Position numbers and translations under genes: made by a program. A stretch of DNA of 61,954 nucleotides, the filler included, from Choristocarpus tenellus KU-1152 (Eukaryota; Protista; Phaeophyceae): NCBI GenBank assembly GCA_964200185.2. It is 11 parts of 11 records of this genome, joined end to end, with 100 filler letters (N's around TTAATTAATTAA, not from the genome) between each part and the next. Parts side by side here need not be neighbours in the genome. Positions count along the whole stretch, not along the records: positions 52,805 to 58,986 come from CAXNAD020008738.1; 10 more parts are not named here. The stretch is one strand, 5' to 3'. A model generated the notes under the pieces. The model did not search any database, was not told the origin of the DNA, and saw nothing but the letters and a program-made list of their open reading frames with translations. This document shows positions 5,419 through 58,986 of this stretch, piece by piece (the first letter of the stretch is position 1; each line of letters begins with the position of its first letter).

Positions 5419-6719
5419 GCGGAGCCGATGCTGAGGAAGGTGCTCTCTTTGAGGGAGAAGGTTTTGGGTAAGGAGCACGTGGATGTTGCAGAGTCACTTA
5501 CCAACTTGGCAGTGCTTTACAACCAAAAGGTACAGTACAGTACACTTGTACCTTCATAAGTCTCTCTTAAGCTTTTGAATTTTCGTTGTTTGAGCGTAGC
5601 AGGATTTGCAGGATGGGGGAGGGGCAGGGGGGTTTGTATTGTGGAGATTGAAGATCTGGTGAATATCACCTAGAAATAGATCGTTGAGGAACGCTTCTCC
5701 AGCTTCAGATGTAGAACCATTATTCTTTGGAGTTAAAAAAATTCTTTTGTTTTTAAAAAATAAATTAATAGGATTCTGCGCCTTAGGCTCTAAAAAACCT
5801 TATCTACAGTTTGTAGTACCTTGATAGTAATTCCTCTTGGGGATCACATTTTTATGGGGTATGTCCCCTGCAACCTGGCCCTGTCGTTTGATGTGATGTG
5901 ATGTAGCTGTACCTTTTCTTTCCACACTACCCTCTTTGTGCAAATGTGGTGCGTTTGTCTCACCTGCTGCATATTATTATTTTTTGGCTTAGTCAGATCA
6001 TCGTGAAGAGAGAAAGAGTGTGTTGATGGGCGAGGGGGGGGGGTATTGGTGTTAGGCTAGGGTGAGTGTGTATGTTCTATGAATACATTGTANNNNNNNN
6101 NNGCTTAGTCAGATCATCGTGAAGAGAGAAAGAGTGTGTTGATGGGCGAGGGGGGGGGTATTGGTGTTAGGCTAGGGTGAGTGTGTATGTTCTATGAATA
6201 CATTGTAGCATACACAGGATTGAAATGGTGTAGTATGAGGATGTCGCAGGGGGGATGGGGTTAATGCGTTCAACCCTTACCACTTGCATCACCCGCCTAT
6301 ATCTTCTTTGATCTGGGAAATATATTTTTCTATTTTCTATTTTCTACAGTGAAGAATGCATCTATCGATGTGTACATCAAAAGTGTCTTTTGTATTTTTT
6401 AAGAAAAATATTTGGTTCTTTAAATGTTCTATTTTTTATTGTACTTACACTCGCAGTAAAGAATCGCTACAAATATAAAAAATCGCATTAAATTTTTTTC
6501 ATATTTTCAATTTTTGTTTTTGTCGCCTACCTTCCGCCCCCCATCCCCGTTTTTCAGGGCAAGTACGAGGATGCATTGCCCATGCTGGAGCGTAGTCTGG
6601 ACATACTGAACAAGAAGCATGGGGAGGAGCACTTTAAAACAGTTGCTTGCCTGACACAGATTGTAGGAACACGTCAAAAGCAGGAGCATTATGTGGAGGC
6701 CCAGGAGATACTGACCAAG
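5419..6719 (+). CDS. Kinesin-light-chain-type tetratricopeptide repeat protein (partial; exons 5419-5529 and 6558-6719)
   Basis: GT-AG phase-0 exons join to AEPMLRKVLSLREKVLGKEHVDVAESLTNLAVLYNQK|GKYEDALPMLERSLDILNKKHGEEHFKTVACL..., matching the 42-aa TPR_10/TPR_12 consensus. Confidence 0.85.
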
Positions 6720-12658: not shown

Positions 12659-14026
12659 ATTGCTTTATGTGCACAATAGTCTACGCAAAATTGATATGCT
12701 CCGTTTCCATCCACAAAGTGAGACCACAATTCAGCAAAGGTGAATTATACAAAAATGATTTTTTTTGCCCTTTCTCAGGGTCCTTGAAATGCAACCCTGA
12801 CTTACTCTCAGTTGGTTTGATTTACAACCCTTCCACTCCTACAACACATCACACATCACAACACGTTTTAAACTCTCACCCTCATCTCCGGACAACGTTG
12901 GAACGTTAAGCCTGACTGAATCATTCTCTCTTACTAGGAACCACCATTCTCCCCTGTCACAGTCCACCTTGGAAATGATGGCACCATCAAACAAGATCAA
13001 GATAACGTCAAGTGGGATGAGGGTTGAGGATGAGAATTTGGAAGGTGTGAAAAGTGTGGTGGGATGGGAGAATATATCTTTTCTTCCAGAACAATTATAA
13101 CAGGCAAAAATTGATTAAATTCGGGCTAAAACCAGGTGAAGGTAGGCCAGAGGTGTTGTACCTGTGAACAACAAGGGGGGGGAACAGGCACACGGCGATT
13201 CTAGCAGGGGTCTCCAGACCTATCCACCTTGGTTTCACCAATACTCGATTTCGGTACGAAGTGGCGCAGGTGTACCCCTTCTTGGCCACTACCCATTTTC
13301 TTTCCAGTAGTCACAGTTTTTTTCTTCCCTCATAAACCACAAACTCGCACATACCTACACTGCTTACCCTTCATGAGGTGAACCAATGATTCACCTGTTC
13401 TCATCTCCTCATATTGGACATCTGGAATCTTACGACAATCAACCTGTACATTCAACAGCTACGTATGGAAGATCAAGCTCACCAACTCTGCATCAACAAC
13501 ATATTATGCCAAGGAAGGATGGACAAAGATGATACTACATGATGACTGCAAACATACCGCAGTAAATGAATGAGGTGTGCCAGCAGATATTGTACTGTTT
13601 TGGTGGTCGAATTTACCACCCTTAGAAATAATTGCATGGGAAGTGAAGTGCCCATGCTTGTTTACTATTTGCTTCTCACGAATGTCTTCATATATGTGCA
13701 GTGCGTGGGCAGTGGAGAAGCTGAGGCAGCCAAGGAGGTGGATGAGGAAAAAGGGTGACTGAGAGCTGGTGACTTGATCTTCAAACTTCACATATTATAT
13801 GAGGTCGACACGTATCTGGACAACTGCAAAACTCCAGACCTGCTGAACCAGCGAATATACATAGATAGTGTGATGAACCAGAAACTGATGATGGAGCCAG
13901 ACAGGGACAGGATGGCATATGTGCGGCAGAAGGAGCATCGTGCTCACACATCAGAAGCTGACATATTTCATCCAGTCGTGGCAACTGCCATCATACTTCA
14001 TTGCTCTTCTTACATATAGTAGTATA

Positions 14027-14284
14027 GACTGAAAGTATCTTAGAGGGTACGAGTTCTGCCCTGTTTGTCCATTTGGGGCTTGACTTCTGACGAATTTTTT
14101 ATGACATTTTCCAACTCCGAAATGTTTTCCAGTAGGTCATACGTGTACGCTATGAAAAGGTTTGTTCGGAACATGGATATTGAAACTTCCTAACAAGCAC
14201 GATAGTCGAAATTTCATCTAAATCACAAAATTGGATTTTGGATCCCAAAAAAACACGACTCTACCGTCTAAGATACTTTGACTC
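14027..14284. mobile_element. MITE family B copy
   Basis: gactgaaagtatcttagagggtacgag...gtccatttgggg ... ctctaccgtctaagatactttgactc. Confidence 0.9.
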
Positions 14285-15520
14285 ACAGCCACCATTTAAT
14301 TTCTCAGCATATGGTTGGTGTGAGTTCCAACCTCTACAACGACTAAATGAGGGGAGTTGGTGATGTGTATGGTATTGATACGATTCTCTGGCCAGATGTG
14401 GCAGGGTCTCATGGCAACTCTCTCTGGGGTGAGGCTTGAGATGGATGGAGGTGTAGGTGGTAGTGTGGAACAGGCGCAACTACCGACGCAGAGAGTAGCA
14501 GGGAGGGAGTTGGGAATTTCAGGCAGGCAACCGTATATATAATGGGACAAGAGTCAAGTGAGAGCACAACCTGTGGAGGGAGTTTGAAGAAAGAAGTGGA
14601 GTGGGCAAAGTAGGAGGACCAGGGTTAAGGGGTATGGATGGTAGTGATTTATACTATTATACGAACTGAGAGGTATACGCATTTTAACCGTTTTGCATTA
14701 TCACACACCTTGTTTTTCCCTCGTACAATACAACAAACCATTTTCTTGTTTTACGTGTAATAGAAGCCCTCAAAACTGAAGGTGTCACTACAGAAGAAAG
14801 GCTAACCGAGAATTTACCACAATAGAAAAAGGAAAAACTTTTCGGAAAAATGATGTTTCGACAGTACATTTTGGACAATTGTTGGGATCCTTATAAAAGC
14901 AGCTGTCCTTATATACGTATCAGTTAGTACGACTCGGTGATGTGCTATAGAAATGGGACAGGTACTATTATGTCCACAAGCTAGGTAGGTGAAGGGTCGA
15001 GCAAGTCAAGGAGGTGGTGGATCTTGCCCGTGGGGACCTGCTTCTGACCCCTTGTCCCAAGGTTTACTTTGCGTGCACTGCTACCAAAAAAGCAACTGCA
15101 GCTCCCCAATCCATTGTTGACTGCACCGCCTTGGTCCCAAAAGCCTCCCAGCCACCATCATGGCGCAGGATGTGTGGCCATATTATATTTTTAGTCTAGC
15201 GCTTCAAGAAGTGGCTGGTGGGGGCATTGGTGGTTCAAGATAGACTTTCACTATTCCTGAACTGATGTTTGTCCAATATCAGGGGCCGCTGGTCCGTAGT
15301 CTCCTTGGTGAACAACATGACTGCATATCTTGGGTCCTGTTTCTTCTGAGTATGAAAATTATATTGTTGAACTATTTAATCCAGGTACAATGATGTATTT
15401 ACTTCAAAATCGGTCAACCAAATACTAGATATAAACTGGGAATTAAAAAAAACACGAGGAATATCCCTGTGAGACATGCTGCTTTGGATTTGCAGTCCTC
15501 TGGTCACATATGGCGCTCTA

Positions 15521-15776
15521 CCTCGCGTATTGAGTCAAACCAACTGAGAGGTAGGCAGAGTTGCATTTTTAGGATCCCGGTAAGGGAAAATATATGTCAT
15601 TTTGTATAATAGCAGAAAGAGCCTTTGCTGAATTGTGGTGTCACTTTGTATGTGTGGAAGGGGGAAATATCAATTTTACGTACACTATTGTAATGAAATA
15701 GAGTGTATTGGGCAGGGTAACAAAAATGCCTTAGAATTCAAGAAGGCCCAAACCTGCCTACACCTCTCAATCGGTT
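15521..15776. mobile_element. MITE family D copy
   Basis: Inverted ends aaccaactgagaggtaggcag / ctgcctacacctctcaatcggtt. The left end extends to ta|cctc, mirroring gagg|ta at the end of the 60199 copy. Confidence 0.8.
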
Positions 15777-18220
15777 AGGTTCACTACTGCATCACTGCAC
15801 CTTGTCTCTCGCATCAAGCAACTAATCATTGTTTATTTCAGCACATTAATATTATCTTAACTTTGCATCTGGTGGGACTATGATAATTTCCCCAACCCGT
15901 GGTCAGAGTCAGTGCACATGACATTACTAATGCTTCAATACTACTTCTTAGTACTTGTTTAGAACTACGTAGTATGAAGCACAAACTGTTGCAGTACAGG
16001 TAACTGCACTGCCTCGTGCGTGCCCTGATTAGGTTCAGTCATCCTGCCGTTTGTCACGGCCACTCTTCGTCAAATATTGCCCTCCATGCACCTGGCAACA
16101 CCAATTCACAATGAAGCCTTATCATCTTGTTTCAGGTTTTTCTGAGTATCTGGTATAGCGAAGGATTAGATGTAACACAGATGTCCATTGCATGGTGCTT
16201 GGCAGTGGGACCATAGACCCCAGATTTCGGTGAAGCAAAAAAGAAAAATTGTCCTTGGCCGGGTTATGATTAGTACATAACTTTGCATAAGCTGAAGGTG
16301 CTTTGCCATGCATAGCCACGCCCACACGAAATTAACTTCACTTAAGCGGCAACAGGATACACCTGTACTTTACCTTGGAGATATTTGCAGTCAGCCATTG
16401 CTAACAGTTTCCAGATATGTATTTCTAATCTTAGTGATGAGGAAAGAAAAGAACGACAATGGAGTCAGAGTAAACGAGAGCCAGTTGCATTTGAAGGGTG
16501 AGGGCAAATAAGTATAAATTTCCTTCTTTTTTACAATTGAATGTAGGATATTTTCCGATTGTGTCGAAAATTTTTAAACAATAGAGAAATCAACCCGCTG
16601 AAGTCAAACTTAAGACTTGATCGATAGAAATATGGTTGAATTGCAAAAGATTGAAACTGGCTTATAATGCAAAAGGGGCAAAAACTTGGTACCTCTCGCT
16701 TACTTTGACTCTGCGTAAGTACAATAGAAACAGCTCAGGGGGGATACCCTGCCTCTACTAGCCGATAATATCAAGCACAGTAGATTGCATTTCAGGCTCT
16801 CTCAACATTCCATAAAACAAAATATTTTCTTGCAGGTTTGTTCTTTGATTCCTTTTTCTTAGATTCACTGCAGGAACGAGGAATGAGGCACACAACTCAC
16901 CGAGGGTGTGAACAGCTGTTCTCAAGGAGGGGTATTCAAAAATGAAGTATTGAGTGGCTTGTTTTGTAAGGCAGATTAGATTGACAGCACCCTGCCACTA
17001 CTTTGCCCATGCTGGTCCTAAAAAGGGCGTGATTGAACGGAGAAAAAATGAGAGAATGCTAAATAGGTCCAGTTCGATCGAGCCACTTGCTTGTATCCGT
17101 GTTCTATTTACAGTGATCAAAGTAAGTTTTGCAGATAATGAAGAAGTGGAATTTTCCAGGGCGCAGCCAGGGAGGGAGGGAGTGCATCTCCTCGTGGGTA
17201 GTCGGTATTGGGGTACTCACTAGTTCTTAAATCCATCTGCCTGAGATATGTAGAAGGTGTATCTGTTTTGGGATATTCATCCATACACACGAGATTCCTG
17301 GAACGAGGTGCGATCGCCAATCCCTAACCTCTATTTCAACAGCAATGATGAAATCCATCTATTGTAGCACCAGAATCACAGACTAACATTTGCTTGGAGC
17401 GTTTTACTACAGGTAGCGCTAACTGGATTTCACTACACATCCCAAACAAAAGCCTTACCAATTCTAGAATGATCATGAATTGGGCCACGTATCAAGTTCA
17501 CAAAGATTTCCTCGACACAGAGGAACCTTATCAGTCCGATAATATTACAATTTATGACCCAAAATTGGTGAGCGATGGTTGATCGAGATCTTTGGCTGGG
17601 TAGTCAATAAAACACACTGAAGTTGACCGGTAGCTTTAAAACTGCTTCTCCTCTCCATGTTGAACATCCCTTGGATGGTAGGCCTGTAGCCAAATAGATG
17701 GTGCACCTCGAGCGATAGTCACCTCCCACCCCGCACAGAGTTACAATGTCTAAGGCTTGAAGTATTGTACACTTATCAGAAAGGGATGAAATGTTGAAAG
17801 TCGCTTTGTCTCTGACCACGACAAAATTTAGTGGACACTTCAGAGAAGAGCCCTCAAGACCAACTCCCCGTTCCGCAAACATGCATTGTGAAAGTATACC
17901 AGACCACTACCATACCACCTTCATTGACTCACTCACAAATAAACTAAGCAAATTACATTTGCAAGGAAGGGTGGGAAGTAAGTGCCAAATGCATCTGTAC
18001 ATTTATGCTGTACACATACTCTAATCCAGAGTGACTCAAGGAAAACAATATAGAGCTGATTGCTTGGATGGGGAGGATCATATTCATACTTTTTTTATTT
18101 AGTAGGGAGTATTGAAGGGGTCATTAGACCAGGAAGGCATATGCCATATCAGGGCCATACACACCTGGAATCGAACCATGTAACTTTCAGCAACGTGCAA
18201 TAGTGAGAAATCAAGCCCTA

Positions 18221-18425
18221 GGCTCAAAGTATCTGGGGGGGGGGGGTGACGGCTGTCCATTTGTGGCCCATTTTTATTGTCGCGATTGTTGGGTTTNNNN
18301 NNNNNNNNNNNNNNNNNNNNNNNNNNNNNNNNNNNNNNNNTTAATTAATTAANNNNNNNNNNNNNNNNNNNNNNNNNNNNNNNNNNNNNNNNNNNNCCCC
18401 CACCCCCCCCTCAGATACTTGAGCC
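18221..18425. mobile_element. MITE family A termini flanking a linker (probably two different copies)
   Basis: ggctcaaagtatctggggg before the linker and cagatacttgagcc after it. The flanks do not form a TSD. Confidence 0.7.
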
Positions 18426-18637
18426 TCATATTTGAAGATATATTATATGATCAGTATCTAAATAAACTACCATCAAACTTGAACTTGTTCTGTTGGACTG
18501 AAATTCTTATAACTTGAACCTGTTCTGTTGGAATGAAATTCTTATTCCTTGTCTATGAGGGGACTGAGAAATCTTCTGTTCTGTATCATGCATACAAAAG
18601 CAACAGAATTTGTTAACTTTTAGAGGCGACTTCTTAC

Positions 18638-21600
18638 CATGCCAGGGACAAGGTCATCGATAATGTACTCGAAAAATCCACCATCAGCAGATCCCACGTG
18701 GATGACATCCGAATCATAAGCAGATCCATTTGGCATGCTTCCAAAGTAATGATCGATTGAGACTGAGGAATTTCCACCTCCAGAGCACAAGAGACTGCTT
18801 GTGTCATATACCTGAGCAACAGTGTGGAGTATGACAAGGATAATAGAAGTTCATTAGTGGTTATATGAGGCCTAGAAGCTTAGAGCACGATAAAATGGTC
18901 AACCAAATTTCCTGTAATAGATAATATGGCCAACAAATTTCCTCATCGCTGAATAACCGCTAGCCAGCCGCATATAATCCAATTAAGAGAATCTTCTAGT
19001 CATTACTTCTGCTCCATATCTAGACACATGCAGCATTCTCTGGCGCTATCCATGGCGTATACACACAATTTCCAGTCTAATGATTTTAACATGATAGGCT
19101 CACCTCAAGAGTTGGGAATGGACCAACTTCCGAAGTGAACTCAATTTTCCAGGAAGAATTTGTATTGCTATTGTTGACGGACACAGAGACGGTTCCCACA
19201 TTGGGCATGTTCTCAAGGGCCGTTAGGATATCCCAAGCAGATGCACTAGCATCAATTTCTGTCGACAAGTACAGACCCTAAAAATTGTGGTAATTGGAAG
19301 AGGCAAACGTTTAGTGTGTAGGTGACCCACATGACGATTTGTCCTTGGGTAGGATCCAGCATGTCAAACACATGGCACACCACTGAATGCAAAGGATGTT
19401 TTAGTCTGGATGCTTTCATATTGAATAAATTCGATCAAGAGGTTGAGGAAACCAGCATCAAAGGAACACAGAAAATTGCAATCCTTGTGGCATCACTTTC
19501 CCACAAATAATAATTTTCTATTGCACCTGAATTGGGGCAAGGTTGTATTCTGTGGTATTGAGTGCCAGTCGGAAGGATCCCATAGCCGTTTGTTGCCCAG
19601 GGCAAACCACTTCCACAATGGCAGACGTCAGATTGTAGCTGGAGAAGCTCACAGCAGACCACTCCAATAAGTAGGCCTATTACAAGAGAGATTTGTTAAA
19701 CCAAAGATGCCAAGGTAGTCTTGACCGAGGAATCACAGCGTAGAAGTGGGCTTCAATCTCTTCAATTCTTCCCAGTTGACAGAGCTGAGTATGGCAAAAA
19801 TATTCCATTTCAGAACAATTTACTCACCACAATGTCACTACCTCCTGTCCCATGGAAGTCATTGTAATCTGCTTTCACTGTTGGGGCTTCCCAAGACACC
19901 AGAAGCGACCGCCCACGGACAGCGGACTCTGTGACCAGGACAGGAAAGTGGATGGATCACCAAGTACTAAAACAACAGTCGCACAGAATTCTCATCAGTA
20001 TGAGCTCTGAATACCCAAGTACATGTGAGCAATTCACATGCACTTGTCTTATCACCACTGCTAGAAAAAGTTGAGTCATTCTTGTCTCTATTGTGACAAG
20101 TGGCATTTGATATGTACTCATGACTTAGATAGCAATGATCATTTTCATATGTAGCAATGCTGGACCTCTGCTGGAGACAGAAGGATTGCTTAACCACTGA
20201 CCTGTCTCCTCTGAGGATAGTTCTTGAATGGTTGAGGGGTAGCCTGGGGGATCTGGAGATGTAACAGGGGTGGCGTCCTTGTAGTTTGCAACCGATCCAT
20301 ATCCAAGGGAATTAAAAGCTGCTACGCGAACATAGTATTGAACACCCTGCTTCAGACCAGTGATGTTGTAGCTGTAACAGGGAGGTGTGTACGTAAGGAA
20401 TACCACCAACTAAAGGGTATAGTCGTGTAATTGTATGTGGAAGACTTCATTTTGTGAAAACGCCTGACTAATCCTGATTATGCTGCTATGCTGGTGCTCA
20501 AGTACTATTGACCAGGGACTACATCTAGCTGAGTCACTCAATGTGACCTCAACAAATTTAACTAACCTTCCCTTGCTATCCAGGCCAGAGACTTCAACCT
20601 CTGGGCTGGTGCCATTGACAGTATCATAACTCATTGGTTTGTTGCCAAGACTATTGAATGTTGGGAACGTGTCCCACTCCACCTGGATTGGATGGAATCA
20701 AATTCATGTATGTCGATTGGTTAAGTCCAGAAATTGAATATATAATGCTTTTGTAAGGTGTTGCCAAAATGAAAAAATGAGACACCCTTCTGGAGAAAAA
20801 TTAGAGAAGTTTGTTCAGGCGTATAACTGTGTGTGTAGGACTTTGTTCATAGTGGGCCTTGGGACAAAAGTGCGACATAGTAAGGAGAATGTGCTAATTT
20901 TCCTTAGAGCACTTATTAATACATGTTCTATAAAAAAAATGTAGTGCTGTGAATCTACACCATTGATAAGTAAATACTATAATGGAATAGCACACAGAGC
21001 ACATGATACAAGGCAACAGGCACCCATACATATTTATAGATCCCAATTTAAAAATCACCTCTACGTTTTCAGTCTCAATATATTGCTCTTTATGTCAGTA
21101 CTGCAGTGATTTCAATCACTACAATTCACAACACGAACCAAAAGACTTGTGTGTACCATCTGTTCCTGGAAGCTATGCTATGCATATATCATGCTGTTAC
21201 AGTATCCAGCATAGTGTAGCCATTCTGGGACAACAATGCAGTTACAAATTGGAGTGGTAAGATCTGCGTCCGAAGATTGGTAAGAACAATAAGCTGCATA
21301 CCTTGAACTTTGTCACAAATGTAGCTGAGCATGTACTGCTTGAATTTAGGTCAAATGAATCCGCCATGAAGGTAACCTGCATATGCACATAGCCAATTGC
21401 AAGGGTATCTCAATACTGGGAATGATGTCACATATTTCAAGAGGTATTTACTACTTCTCCACCTACACATTTCTAAAAAGTATTCAAGAAGCTGGTCACA
21501 TATTAGAAAAATCAACAACTTGAACTGCATGGAAGTGTGCAAGATGCATCACTTTCAAAAAAAGAATACTTACAGAAGGTGAATTCTGCATTGATATCCC

Positions 21601-52704: not shown

Positions 52705-52805
52705 NNNNNNNNNNNNNNNNNNNNNNNNNNNNNNNNNNNNNNNNNNNNTTAATTAATTAANNNNNNNNNNNNNNNNNNNNNNNNNNNNNNNNNNNNNNNN
52801 NNNNA

Positions 52806-53324
52806 TGTATCTACTCTGTGCATTACGAGGGTCAATATGATGACACCTCCTTGCCACCTGAGCTGAGGTCATTCATGACAGAGGACGAGATCGAGGAGGG
52901 GGTCGAACAACTAAAGGAGAAGGAGAAAAGGGACCGTGATCAGACTGCAGCCCAGCGTGCCAACAAACGCAAGGCGCGGATGACTCTACAGGCAAATCGT
53001 AGGGAGGAGGAGAAGGATACCGGGACATACATCCTCCTCAAACCATCATTGAAGATTGTACCAGTTTTGGACGGGGAAGGGACACTTCATTCTAGAGCCA
53101 AGGGCAGGCGAATGTACTTTCGGATGGACGAGCAGTGGATACAAGGGACCGTCACCAAATACCAGCCTCGCCAAACTGAGCCAGTGGGAGAGGAGCGACT
53201 CAGCTACCCCTATGAGGTCAAATGGGAGAATGGCGAGATGCGAAATATCAATCTTTTTCAACAACTATACAGCACGGAGCCCAACGCGGAGCCGAGATCC
53301 TGGTTCTGGACCAGTCCCATATGA
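52806..53324 (+). CDS. C-terminal fragment of a protein with a charged helix and a Tudor/SH3-like barrel; probably transposon-encoded
   Basis: Frame open from the contig edge for 172 codons. Contains GRRMYFRMDEQWIQGTVTKY...YEVKWENGEMRNINL. A family-A-type TIR lies 1.1 kb downstream. Confidence 0.6.
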   Translation, partial: CIYSVHYEGQYDDTSLPPELRSFMTEDEIEEGVEQLKEKEKRDRDQTAAQRANKRKARMTLQANRREEEKDTGTYILLKPSLKIVPVLDGEGTLHSRAKGRRMYFRMDEQWIQGTVTKYQPRQTEPVGEERLSYPYEVKWENGEMRNINLFQQLYSTEPNAEPRSWFWTSPI

Positions 53325-54407
53325 CCGCGATATGGAACGGAGGATTGCAGCGAGTCCGACGCGCTACCATCTTTTCGAAATTCGTGGTCGTCTGTCACTC
53401 CCTCCCCTCATCTAAGGGGAGACATCATGCCTCCCGTTGGGCATCCTGTCCTACATCATAGTTGAGGTCGGACGTGTGCTGTCGAGGCAGGGGTCATTTC
53501 TTCCATTTAAATTACACAAGAGTGTAATGTCTATATCTCCTTCCTTTTTTAGGCGTACGTGTGCAGCCCCACCTTTTCATTTTGTGTTGATTTTTACATA
53601 TAGACGGTTCCAAACCTGTTTCTTGGTCAATTACATTCATTACGACTACTGGTATATATTACATGGTGTGTTGAAGTTAGAAATGTATATGTATAGAGTT
53701 TTTACATCGAAAAAATTAATTTAGTTCTCTGTGTGTTTGCTAGAAAAAGCATATATTCTCACATCGCAAATAATAATACACATCACTGCAGAAAATAATT
53801 CGTTGCACACCCCCCTTCTAAAGTGTGGTCTTCTATATGCGGCGTTCCTCCTTCCACCCTTAACAGACGGAGACAACAATCAACATCGCACATTCCCCTC
53901 TCCCATAAAACACTCTTGTTAGACTTTGGTATCACATGCCCCCCCTCCACAAAGGACATAATTTACATACCTCCAAAATACACAAACGTCACGCAATTAC
54001 CCCCGTCGAAAAAACTCATCCCCTCGCACACCCTCAACTTACATGGAATCCAAACAAATTCCTTATCCCTTCTTACCCCTCACCATTTCACGAGGCCCTC
54101 TCCATCAATTGACAATCGCATATCGCTTTATGCTGGAAATGACAATCCCTAAACACCCACCTCAATTAGCACTCATCCCACTCCAGTAAGGCGATGCGAG
54201 ATGATCCAACCCGATCCACACTCCACGATATACTAACCACCCAAACACCCCACCAGATAAATCGACCTCCAAAAAGGCCACTTTTCGAACATCCGAAGCT
54301 CCAAGTACGTACAATAGATGCAGACTATGCAATATTCCACCCCAACCTGGCACTCCATTTATGCGTTTTTCACAACATATTCATACCATTTCCAGCACAT
54401 ATAGGAG

Positions 54408-54461
54408 GGCCCATTTGGATGCCCCAGTGCAACCCCCCCCCCTCCACAGATACTTTGGCCC
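54408..54461. mobile_element. Family-A-related terminal inverted repeat of a longer element
   Basis: cccatttggatgccccagtgcaacccccccccctccacagatactttggccc. The upstream sequence differs from the MITE A interior. Confidence 0.65.
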
Positions 54462-55369
54462 TTTTAGTTTGGGGACTATCCTGACCCGTGTTCAGAGACA
54501 CTACACATTGTACCACTTCTCATACTACTAGCTACTGATGAACTATTGTACGCTACCTCAAACTGTACTGGCTTCGTTCTTGCCCTGCGTATCTTGAGTT
54601 GAGTTCTGCAATCCAACTGCTCGTTCTCTCTCGTCCCTCGATTCTTGCGCTAAACTCGGCTCAACACTAACACCTCGTTTTGGTTCGTTTTTTTTCTGAC
54701 GTAGGAGCAGACGGGATAGCTGATCGATTGGTTGACTATCATACATTAGGTCAAACTATGATACAGTGATACTGGAGAGAAGAAAACAATTGTCAGAAAC
54801 CGTTAAAGAGAAGGGAGCAGCATACAGCGTCTTCAAACCCACTGCCAGACTGGCAATGCAAAAAGAGAGCAAGAATGAATAGGTTTGCCGAAAAAGGAAG
54901 ATGCATCAGACAAGTCCACAGAGAGGACAAAATAAACTGAGATAAAAGCACAATCCAGGGATTAGCTCCAGCCTCAAGGATCATGATTTGTTCAAGGGGC
55001 ACGTATCCACATGCACTTCAGGGCATATAGGTCAAGCTGTTATATTCGCTAGGTGCAACCTACTACCATTAACACTAAGAAGGGTCTCCAATTAATTGGC
55101 TAAGTAAAGAAACCAGTCCCCCTCCTCTCCAAACAAAAAAAGGAAAAAAGCGAACATATAAATAAAAGAAGCTCAGCAGACATTTAGCACATGTTGGTGA
55201 CCAAGACCACTTTCACATGACAGACTGTGGCTACTTCGGACCCAACCAGATGTACATGGATTATTTTGCTCCATCCTCCACATATCTGTGCCACTGGTTT
55301 GAGTCTTCTACAAATGAACCCACTGATGATTAGCAGTTATGTTGAAAGCCTTAAGGCCATCTTGGAATT

Positions 55370-55628
55370 GAGTGAAATTATCTTAGAGGGTACGATTTTT
55401 CCCTGTTTTTGTCCATTTTGGGCTTGGCTTCCCACGGGTTTTTAATGACACTTTACCTATTCCAAAATGTCTTGGAGAAGGTAAAATGTATATGCTATGA
55501 AAAGGTGTGCCCAGAACAAGGATATTGACATCTCCTAACAAACATTATAGCCAAAATTAATTAATATCGCAACGTTGTATTCTGGCCCCCAAATGGACGC
55601 GACTCTACCCTCTAAGATACCTTGACTC
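55370..55628. mobile_element. MITE family B copy
   Basis: gagtgaaattatcttagagggtacg ... ccccaaatggacgcgactctaccctctaagataccttgactc. Confidence 0.9.
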
Positions 55629-55709
55629 ATCACCACCGCCAGTTTTTCTCCGAACTTTCCTTCTCACACTTTTCTTCTCAGCGATACGTTTTCCGAGGAT
55701 AAAGTTCTT

Positions 55710-55983
55710 GAGCCAAAGTATATTTGAGGGTAGAGTCGTGTCCATTTGGGGGTCAAAATCCAATGTTGCGATTTTGATGTAATTTTGGCTTATTTTAATT
55801 TTGGCTTTCTTGTTTGTTAGGAAGTGTCAATATCCATGTTCTCGACACACCTTTTCATAGCGTATACATTTATCTACTCCGAAACATTCTGGAGTAGGAA
55901 AATGTCATTAAAAAAAACATGGGAAGCCAAGCCCCAAATGGACAAACAGGGCAAAACTCGTACCCTCTAAGATACTTTCACTC
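55710..55983. mobile_element. MITE family B copy, opposite orientation, TSD TCTT
   Basis: tctt|gagccaaagtata ... gtaccctctaagatactttcactc|tctt. Confidence 0.92.
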
Positions 55984-57438
55984 TCTTGGGCAAGCGATCA
56001 TCATCTATTTGCAACATGAACCTGGAAATAGGAGCAGATATTGCAGATAATTGGCTTCAATGAACTCTTATCCAGATCTCTGAAGGGCTCTTCTGAAAGA
56101 CATGGGGTGATCTGTACGTTTCCTTTTGTCAAACCCAATAGAGTGATGCAGGGGTTAGTAGTATTGAGCACGGATCTGGGTGTAGTGATCCTTGCTACTG
56201 TTTTCATTGTTTGCGTCACATTAATCGGCAATGATCCCGACCCGTGGTCAGAACCACTACTCGATACACGACTTTCCACACTATTACTACTAAGTGTTGC
56301 ATCGTGTTTCTATTATTTTTGTTGTTCGTTTTTGATGTTGTTGATATTACTATTGTTAGAAACTATTATGATTCGCTCACGTTTTGTGGGGGAACTTCTC
56401 CACGACCTCCACCCTACCGAATCGTCCACCCCTGGTCAGAGAACAGCGCACACTGTACTAACTACCCTACGAACTAAAAGCTGCACTACAACTAATTGCA
56501 CTGCTATATGTGGGTTGACGTTTCTCGCGGTCGGGGTTCAGCGTTCTAACCGGTCGTCGCTCCTCTCCTCCCTTGAATCTGGGGTGTGTATGTTAGTAAT
56601 ATGACATGGCAGATGACTTCTCCAAGCTAATCTGTTTCCTGCAGTTGATCTTGGATAGATTCGATTGAAAAACACATAAGAAACAAGCAAGTAGTCATAG
56701 TGGAAGAAGAGAATGAGAAAACTTCCGACTTAGATATACTCTTTGTAGGAGGTGGGAGAATAGGGGAAGAGAACATGGCCAGGGAAGTGAAGGTCGCAGA
56801 TTTCGCTGAGGTAGCGACCTCGTAGAGATACTCACAGACAAGGTTGTGGAAGAGATGCCAGGGAAGTTCAAGAATAAGTGGCAGATATTCAGAACGGCTG
56901 AAAACGGAGTACCAACAACTATAGGACAGATGCCCAAACACTGCAGCCCAACTTGTTACAGCGGTCTTGCATTGGGGCAACTCACTTTGCCTGAGAGGCT
57001 CTCAGGCACCTTAGGGGAAGACCGTGTGGCTCTTTGGTGGGATGGAATATGAATATTGAGACCTTAGGAGGGGGTTGAAGGAACTAATCGAATCACGTGC
57101 CTACTAGAGGTAGACCCAAGGTTACAAGTGTTAGTGTGAGCATGGTGGAGTTTAGTGGAGAGGATACCGGAGGATTTTTTTTAGCTTTGCAGAGTCAAAG
57201 GTGGTGTGGTTACTATTAAACCGTGGCAATCTTAAAGTTTGTGCCAGTGGAGGTACGAATGTGTGTGATTTCAGGATTGATTGACACGGGGTTGCCGCGT
57301 ACTTCCCCTTCTAATCATTTTTGGGAACTTTGGTGTAGTTCAGGCTTTTTTAACCCTGCTGCCCTCGTTGAGGTTCCTCCTCGTCTCTATAAGAGGAAGA
57401 ACGTGTTTTTTTTTCCCCTGAGGTTTTGTTTGTTTGTG

Positions 57439-57627
57439 GACCCAAAGTATCTTGGTGTGTGTGTGTGGGGGGGGGGTCTACACCAGAGTGCCCATTTGGA
57501 CCAAAACCAGGAAAAGTGCACTTTCATTATCCATCCAATGTATGGAACCAAATCACCCAAAAGTTGCGATATGAAAAAATTGGTCCCAAATGGACTGCCG
57601 GCACCCCCCCCCCAGATACTTTGAGCC
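57439..57627. mobile_element. MITE family A copy (reverse orientation), TSD TGTG
   Basis: tgtg|gacccaaagtatct ... cagatactttgagcc|tgtg. Confidence 0.92.
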
Positions 57628-58779
57628 TGTGGAGGACGAGGTAGACAGAGGAACTATATGTGCACTAATGTCTACTGTCGTCCTTGGAAGGTAGTCGAGC
57701 CTGATCCTAGAGTGTGGGCAGACACTATAGCGTAGAGGGTAGGACAACCTGAGAACGAGCCCCTGGAGGAGGGTTCAATGTTTGAGTTTAAGGTGTATCC
57801 ACATAGGTCCAAAGGGAGTGAATGCGTTGACTAGGATGACGATGAATGAGGATGTGTTTGCCCTGCCCGAAATGAATCTTGTCCACCACGATGCAGATCA
57901 TTCCGTCCTTTTTGTGGTTTAGCGTAAGATAGTAGGGTGCACATTGGGTTCAGCACTTCTACAAATCGTCGCTCTGTCTCCTCCCTCGAATCTTCTCCTG
58001 GGTCCGCGTTGATGTTTCCACCTTGATCTTGGTGTGATGTTTCTGTGCTATTCAACAAACAAGACAATAGTAAGTACACATGTACAATTCGTTGTGTTTG
58101 CTATGTGGATGGTGGCTGGAAATTAGTGGCGAAGAGGTCGCACTGGTTGGTCACAAGGGTTGCTAGAATGTGGGGAGATAAGGGAATAGGGAGGAATACA
58201 AATGTAGAATAAAATAATAATAATAAATATCCAGAATTCGTGAGCAAAACAAAGTAGCCTTAAACCCTAACTCTAAACGAATTCCTTAGTGATGTGGTTA
58301 ATCCAAGTCAAATGTCCTTCCAACAAAATTTGGTCTCTTCTAAGTTCTAATCTTGGGATTACTGTAACAGAATATTAAGAGACAACTACCAAACCTACGT
58401 GGAAAACGTAAAGAAAGATCCTGTTTACAAAACGCCTCGTTTTCTTTCTGTGTATAACGGAATGTGGTGTTGGTAATTATTTTTCAAAGTTCATATTACA
58501 TGTTTCGTCATACCTCAATAAGAAAAAGTATGGTACTTTCATTCTCACCACCACCCCCCTCCTCGCTCTTCTTGCAGAAAAAGATATGACTAACGTGGAA
58601 TTGAATCTAACTTTGTATTATGTTTTTGCTAGATTTTGGTACCACTATTACCAAATGATATTATCGGACATTATGTTCCTATATTGAACGATTTAAGAAC
58701 AATATATTTTTGTATGAGTTCATATATATCTAAAGTAGTTCACCTATAATTATCATATAACTTAGGGTTATCCCTAACC

Positions 58780-58986
58780 CAAGCTTGCTAAGTTCGTGTG
58801 CATTGCACGCGTGAGTTCGAATCTCACCGGTGTCGCCAATGTGAATCGTGTGATTCTGTGTGTGGCGGCGTGGTTCACTCAGGCAAGGGTGGCGAAGAGA
58901 ATCGCCGGGCAAGACCGATCACACGAACAAGGACGAACCGTGACCGAGGGTTGTCCCAAGTCTATGGGATTGGTCACATGAAGAAC
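58780..58986 (-). mobile_element. LTR-like end plus 59-nt tract complementary to mature tRNA-Ser(GCT) positions 27-76
   Basis: Plus strand 58780-58838 reads caagc-ttGCTaa-gttcg, long variable arm tgtgcattgcac, T-arm gtgag-ttcgaat-ctcac, acceptor strand cggtgtcg, then CCA. One spacer base follows, then TGTGAATC, i.e. an LTR-type ...CA end on the minus strand. Confidence 0.75.

Follow-up and report, generated by a model that had tools for sequence, protein, structure and literature searches.

The closest described counterparts of the locus analyzed here are the primer-binding site of LTR retrotransposons and retroviruses and plus-strand strong-stop DNA, both of which combine an LTR end in ...CA, a spacer of one nucleotide, and a stretch complementary to the 3' terminus of a tRNA with its CCA. 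TRIM and Cassandra-type elements unite a very high copy number with short terminal repeats and a primer-binding site, while template switching by LINE reverse transcriptase (RT) makes chimeric retrocopies of the U6-L1 type. A strong-stop-DNA model for the origin of tRNA-derived SINEs was reportedly proposed by Ohshima, Koishi, Matsuo, and Okada in PNAS in 1993; it is said to require the whole tRNA, whose A and B boxes drive transcription by RNA polymerase III. Synthesis of plus-strand strong-stop DNA normally halts at m1A58, after 18 nt of the primer, and without this stop at position 58 the RT copies more of the tRNA, giving a product that cannot complete synthesis or integrate (PMC8599865). 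Another modification, m2,2G26, blocks RT and occurs in tRNA-Ser, as shown in human cells (PMC11831618). Breaks in chromosomes capture LTR cDNA intermediates of Ty1 that carry nucleotides present only in the cDNA (PMC11372161).

The window is the whole stretch of DNA analyzed (61,954 nt, filler included), in whose coordinates all positions are given; the piece under study occupies positions 52,805-58,986 (CAXNAD020008738.1). Contigs of organism A match the piece exactly, and these matches, the identity of an open reading frame, and a common 1.7-kb repeat (both described below) indicate that it is a short contig of Choristocarpus tenellus or of a very close relative. Raw reads of organism B (set X21) gave no match to the piece. 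Near its right-hand end, the piece carries a 59-nt sense-oriented copy of the 3' part of tRNA-Ser(GCU), including CCA, and after a single intervening base follows the terminus of a very abundant repeat, designated R1.

The locus shares with the 1993 model a tRNA part with CCA placed directly before a U5-like sequence, but the 5' third of the tRNA is missing and the unit shows no sign of transcription or amplification. As in U6-L1 chimeras, a small RNA is joined through its 3' end to the precise end of a repeat, which in such chimeras is the 5' end and sometimes comes with an extra base; these chimeras, however, depend on a LINE as partner and on the presence of a poly(A) tail and target duplications, and predict no conserved short junction resembling a primer-binding site. 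In the R1 family such a junction, with 13-14 nt of tRNA complementarity, falls within the usual range of primer-binding sites, whereas the locus itself differs from them in having 59 nt of tRNA instead of 18 or fewer and no interior after it. Read-through products of plus-strand strong-stop DNA are non-integrating dead ends in experiments (PMC8599865), while here a sequence of this form lies in the genome. Capture of Ty1 at double-strand breaks in yeast likewise joins LTR-end cDNA to unrelated DNA without integrase (PMC11372161), but it is experimental and involves few extra nucleotides, whereas the sequence found here would be a germline fossil with a 59-nt tRNA part, for which break repair is only the suggested route.

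The tRNA copy

The features of the locus are as follows, with the strand where one applies and the basis of each assignment in brackets.

58254-58779, no strand: AT-rich single-copy left flank (33.5% GC), not in any repeat (flat depth)
58762-58777, no strand: inverted repeat TTAGGG-TTAT-CCCTAA, perfect over 6 bp (direct reading)
58780-58838, plus strand: DNA copy of mature tRNA-Ser(GCU), positions ~27-76, CCA included; read on the minus strand, an over-long tRNA complement resembling a primer-binding site (standard tRNA numbering, fold, shuffles)
58780-58796, plus strand: anticodon arm CAAGC / TTGCTAA / GTTCG (anticodon GCT in the loop)
58797-58810, plus strand: variable arm, a 14-nt hairpin (folding)
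58811-58827, plus strand: T arm GTGAG / TTCGAAT / CTCAC, perfect over 5 bp (folding, Rfam)
58828-58834, plus strand: acceptor 3' strand CGGTGTC (tRNA numbering)
58835, plus strand: discriminator G (tRNA numbering)
58836-58838, plus strand: CCA (read from the sequence)
58826-58838, minus strand: 13-14 nt tRNA complement, the putative normal primer-binding site (conserved family junction)
58839, no strand: one-base spacer A between the R1 end and the tRNA CCA (sequence; the same A precedes R1 in contig L010)
58840-58950, minus strand: terminal 111 nt of R1, the putative U5 end of an LTR (contig depth, L010)
58951-58986, no strand: repeat R2, high-copy and palindrome-rich (depth 84,658 in contig set X1)

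The serine anticodon and the long variable arm agree with a class II tRNA, so the assignment is internally consistent. Four of the five pairs of the anticodon stem form, A28/C42 being a mismatch. The piece has a single T-arm motif with a correctly spaced CCA (58811), and 4 of 2000 shuffles produced one. In Rfam, the T arm alone was recognized (13 bits). A plastid family, which we take to overlap a trnS gene, matched the T and variable arms in antisense, below threshold, and a scan of the whole piece gave chance matches only. No whole tRNA was found in the piece by ARAGORN, the 5' third being missing. Contigs of a seawater small-RNA library matched 58797-58838 with one mismatch, an RNA contig of set X20 ended at the CCA, and among weak blastn matches in phage records the best and most fell under annotated tRNA-Ser features.

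Positions 58780-58838 do not have the properties of a tRNA gene, since the upstream sequence is unlike a D arm, the cloverleaf is incomplete, and CCA is present. In eukaryotic nuclear tRNA genes CCA is not encoded. The presence of CCA together with the missing 5' third points to mature tRNA, not a gene, as the template, and the 59-nt copy must therefore have been reverse transcribed from mature tRNA. The combination of T arm, acceptor strand, and CCA was not found in a scan of bacterial and archaeal genomes, which argues against a bacterial tRNA with encoded CCA, although not against CCA-less genes. A58 appears in the copy as a plain A, without misincorporation. The B box (58811-58827) is intact, whereas neither an A box nor a D arm is present, and hence there is no complete RNA polymerase III promoter.

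The fold and numbering thus confirm the original prediction of a 3' part of tRNA-Ser(GCT) comprising the anticodon arm, long variable arm, T arm, acceptor strand, and CCA. Its claim that the copy starts exactly at position 27 holds approximately: a start at ~27 fits, but the 5' limit is good only to positions ~27-31 because it rests on four of five stem pairs (chance ~0.07 by our arithmetic). Base 58779 is C, whereas G is expected at tRNA position 26. The proposed RT stop at G26 is consistent with the known block by m2,2G26.

Another locus of C. tenellus, L008:500-565, contains a degenerate tRNA-like stretch with an A-box-like sequence, GGCTAAGTGG, and a B box that shares 15 identical nt with the T arm in the window; it could represent either a SINE head or a pseudogene of a tRNA. 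It was considered as kin of the tRNA copy and rejected, being unrelated to it beyond the 15-nt T-arm box.

Repeat R1 and its junctions

The evidence on the R1 family comes almost entirely from one summary of short Logan contigs, possibly of the source sample, and the family junctions were judged from consensus strings rather than from individual contigs viewed one by one. The comparison DNA comprised ~64 kb of C. tenellus contigs (12 contig look-ups, yielding the loci numbered with L).

The depth of R1 over 58840-58919 was 340,826-405,145 in X1, compared to a single-copy level of 24.5, and 121,641-137,684 in the second set, X2, compared to ~6. This corresponds to roughly 14,000-20,000 single-copy equivalents of summed contig depth, which in both sets is not a copy number. 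A likeness to TRIM or Cassandra-type elements could explain such values. As one of the most abundant repeats of the genome, and one that breaks assemblies, R1 merits a proper library entry.

On the minus strand R1 ends in ...GATTCACA, both here and in L010. In most R1 copies the match breaks off at 58840, and the adjoining DNA is AT-rich and unrelated. In X1, 33 plus 77 contigs start at this end with unrelated upstream sequences, the match start of the 77 being clipped to 58861 by a common 4-nt deletion. The NCBI assembly contig L010 holds an independent copy (positions 1-74) that is 93.5% identical to R1, carries the same 4-nt deletion, and continues beyond the R1 end into unrelated AT-rich DNA. 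Since the end is sharp in more than 100 contigs and in L010, position 58840 is a true element terminus. The copy in the window differs from the family by 4 extra nt (tgtg) at 58857 and by three minority bases (58904, 58916, and 58919); judging by the consensus before 58861, many copies may start with TA rather than the TG found here. At 58951 the window copy departs from the R1 consensus, which 16 X1 contigs continue otherwise. The spacer A at 58839 could belong to either the R1 side or the tRNA side.

A conserved group of copies carries a short junction with tRNA sequence. Five X1 contigs match the locus only from 58826 rightward and nine X2 contigs only from 58825 (agreement 0.94), and the sequence upstream of this point, hereafter the leader, is conserved and unlike tRNA; ~30 nt of its consensus are known. 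On the minus strand the family junction therefore reads as the R1 end ...CA, then T, 13-14 nt complementary to the 3' end of tRNA-Ser, and the leader. An abrupt switch from perfect tRNA complement to conserved non-tRNA sequence is what a selected, functional primer-binding site would give, and the consensus strings fit such a function. The terminus in CA with its sharp common boundary, and the primer-binding site placed 1 nt from R1 and followed in the consensus strings by a conserved interior, are properties of LTRs and suggest that R1 is one; in the original prediction the LTR-like character was an assumption. The X1 depth drops from ~340,000 over R1 to 39,589 over 58800-58839 and to 2,298 over 58760-58799. 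Rough arithmetic on these depths fits about a quarter of R1 copies carrying the short primer-binding site, while the long tRNA copy accounts for roughly 1-2% of the depth, or ~200-250 single-copy equivalents, a value inflated by genuine tRNA genes or tRNA-like repeats.

The contigs contain four other extended copies, each at about single-copy depth. Their tRNA parts start at 58783, ~58783-58785, 58786, and 58790-58792, which places the end points at tRNA positions ~30, 31, 33, and 37-39. In all four, R1's own first 19-48 nt precede the tRNA part and no flank is shared; one joint shows an overlap of 3 nt (AAG), and a second may overlap by 2 nt (GC). Read on the sense strand of the element, these copies consist of the LTR, the tRNA complement to ~30-39, and the last 19-48 nt of U5 again, presumably followed by the normal primer-binding site. 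The order R1-tRNA-R1 is as expected if microhomology within U5 allowed a read-through plus strand to prime again there.

At the locus itself, the insert comprises 111 nt from R1 and 59 nt from the tRNA with a single base between them, and its right-hand end lies outside the contig. To the left of the tRNA copy, the depth over 58280-58759 is flat at the single-copy level of 24.5 in X1, and one 619-nt X1 contig spans 58197-58815 with zero mismatches. No trace of a conserved leader was found left of 58780. The left flank being single copy, no element interior follows the tRNA part. The telomere-unit palindrome at 58762-58777 stops 2 nt short of the tRNA copy and may be either a fragile, hairpin-prone break site or a coincidence (rough chance ~0.06). 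In one X1 contig (depth 33), positions 58776 and 58861 are joined on opposite strands, so that the tRNA complement runs 4 nt beyond 58780 and R1 follows in the other orientation; this may be an inverted arrangement at another locus, and the bases aacc (58776-58779) could belong to a shared unit. Apparent skips from 58230-58257 to 58840 were rejected as alignment noise, their sides being only 21-29 nt long and AT-rich.

The piece contains no second R1 copy, and in the ~64 kb of C. tenellus contigs R1 is represented by one end only (L010), at a contig edge. Neither a polypurine tract, a target-site duplication, nor gag-pol was seen in the piece and these ~64 kb; paired R1 was not seen there either, because the assemblies break inside R1. 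A primer-binding site for tRNA-Ser was absent from the ~64 kb, including the copia fragments, and the consensus strings of the leader, the R1 continuation, and R2 had no match in the fetched loci or the piece. The R1 core was not found in a scan of bacterial and archaeal genomes and viral contigs, the tRNA-R1 joint had one match in a metagenome scan, unrelated and within a coding sequence, and a search for proteins sharing words with the open frame that spans the tRNA part and R1 gave zero candidates. The string of the primer-binding site retrieved only an unrelated primer in a full-text literature search.

Origin of the tRNA-R1 joint

The reading that we favor, and to which we assign an even chance, is that an LTR-type element primed by tRNA-Ser produced a read-through cDNA that was a dead end and that repair attached to the chromosome; most likely the event belongs to accidents of a known type and does not define a new kind of element. 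R1 would be the U5 end of the LTR of a very abundant retroelement family primed by cytosolic tRNA-Ser. Plus-strand synthesis would have copied the tRNA while it was still attached to the minus-strand DNA, the RT passing the normal stop in the T loop, continuing through the T arm, variable arm, and anticodon arm, and ending just before position 26, where m2,2G could have blocked it. The read-through product would have been unable to make the second strand transfer, and the LTR-tRNA cDNA or a fragment of it may then have been joined to the chromosome, likeliest by end joining at a break and not by integrase. Against this reading stand the lack of paired R1 copies, a polypurine tract, a target-site duplication, and gag-pol in the DNA covered, the change to an unrelated repeat after only 111 nt of R1, the plain A at position 58 of the copy, and the possible TA start of many R1 copies.

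The original prediction of a retroelement end with a read-through copy of its primer tRNA is thus supported by the sharp R1 end, the short junctions, and the long copies. The predicted spacing also proved correct, with A at 58839 and TG beginning at 58840, one base after CCA, and the minus-strand geometry of a primer-binding site finds its counterpart in the sharp R1 end and the 13-14 nt junction with leader of the conserved group. If the favored reading is true, the locus is a germline record of RT missing the stop at position 58, an event normally seen only in test tubes or infected cells. The anticodon GCT present in the copy would then name the priming isoacceptor directly, which a normal primer-binding site of 13-18 nt cannot do. 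The locus would also provide a cheap genomic read-out of RT-stopping tRNA modifications in a lineage unstudied for them, and it would bear on the old idea that tRNA SINEs started as strong-stop DNAs.

An unlikely alternative takes R1, read in the plus orientation of the window, as the 5' terminus of a non-LTR retroposon, either a SINE or the 5' region of a LINE: target-primed reverse transcription would have switched template at the 5' end of the R1 RNA to the CCA of tRNA-Ser and copied it until blocked, giving a chimera resembling U6-L1. The very high copy number, the sharp 5' end, and the A- or AT-rich upstream flanks, including that in L010, agree with insertion of the LINE type, as does the one extra base at the joint, and repeated template switching could also yield the R1-tRNA-R1 order. 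However, such a mechanism leaves unexplained both the conserved subfamily with exactly 13-14 nt of tRNA end followed by conserved unrelated sequence and the ...CA / 1 nt / TGG geometry of the joint, and the AT-rich flanks are also the local background (33.5% GC). Moreover, Rfam detected no tRNA-like head or RNA family in R1. The region 58864-58950 of R1 was considered as a decayed tRNA-like SINE head on account of an A-box-like motif and was rejected, a 247-nt search giving no Rfam tRNA signal at E 10; ~0.14 occurrences of this motif are expected by chance according to our estimate.

It is improbable that the read-through arose within a complete, normally integrated element whose interior was lost later by deletion or recombination, with the break at the end of the tRNA copy. 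Long tRNA copies do sit within larger family structures elsewhere, and rearrangement is plausible at a locus crowded with repeats (R2 at 58951 and others at 58100-58260). On the other hand, the end point of the deletion would have to coincide with the end of the tRNA copy, and the DNA to the left of 58780 is single copy, with no trace of the leader.

Still less probable is a self-amplifying mobile unit composed of the tRNA part and R1, either a strong-stop-derived retroposon as in the model of Ohshima and Okada or a TRIM-like element. The layout of tRNA part, CCA, and U5-like sequence is what that model predicts, the B box in the T arm is intact, and ~200-250 single-copy equivalents of depth carry the long tRNA part. 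Against this, the A box and D arm are missing, leaving the RNA polymerase III promoter incomplete, and the left flank at 58780 is unique. A head with A and B boxes, as in tRNA-derived SINEs, is lacking, and most R1 copies have no tRNA part at all. The visible extended copies, each at single-copy depth, differ in their tRNA end points and left partners. The variation of the end points among copies argues against a single unit ending at position 27; accordingly, the earlier suggestion of one LTR-tRNA unit that always ends there and spreads like a SINE or TRIM was not supported, since the tRNA end is not constant in the four other copies and these share no flank.

A chance adjacency of a decayed tRNA pseudogene or tRNA-like repeat fragment and an R1 insertion, already disfavored, is very improbable: tRNA-like fragments do occur elsewhere in the genome (the identical 15-nt T-arm box of L008:500-565), but the presence of CCA, the orientation and 1-nt spacing to an independently defined repeat end that fit a primer-binding site, the recurrence of the 13-14 nt at conserved family junctions together with several other R1-tRNA joints, and the rarity of the T arm with CCA among shuffles all stand against it.

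The read-through reading could be extended from this locus to the family, although we consider the extension doubtful. The family would habitually read through its tRNA-Ser(GCU) primer, leaving about a hundred or more LTR-tRNA fossils; the end points (27, ~30, 31, 33, and 37-39) would be a footprint of RT-blocking tRNA modifications, weak or absent m1A58 would be implied, and the fossils would represent living intermediates of the strong-stop route to tRNA retroposons.

Other repeats in the contig

R2, which follows R1 at 58951, amounts to ~3,500 single-copy equivalents, and the contig ends inside it at 58986. Five X2 contigs carry R2 with a different conserved upstream sequence. With a further 24 nt, supplied by an X1 contig that extends past 58985, R2 forms a near-palindrome (CATGAAGA / TCTTCCATG), which is probably the reason why the assembly stops at 58986.

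Positions 52805-54461 belong to a dispersed repeat of ~1.7 kb that is 90% identical to L002:37-1710 and 85% identical to L003:1712-2906. Its open reading frame (52806-53324), at the left edge of the piece, encodes a product that shares 90% and 84% identity with two unnamed C. tenellus proteins, whose contigs also carry the repeat; a match to a BRWD/PHIP ancillary-like domain was weak (E 1.6e-4, below the cut-off). In L002 the repeat adjoins a copia RNase H fragment and could thus belong to a copia LTR or 3' region. Positions 55368-55987 (~620 nt) form a foldback MITE-like element whose nested inverted repeats have arms that are 77-91% complementary. Its copies (78-90% identity) occur in six of the first seven C. 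tenellus contigs, twice in L002 and in L005 and not in L003, and the element is therefore very abundant. A repeat bearing G/C homopolymers (57467-57629) is common to L005:7623-7783 (80%) and L006:4458-4521 (86%). Finally, positions 58100-58260 represent a very high-copy repeat with a summed depth of up to 78,750, compared to 24.5 for single-copy sequence, and its part 58103-58153 recurs as tandem units of ~50 nt in L005:5160-5264 and also in L005:5328-5357 and 6046-6091.
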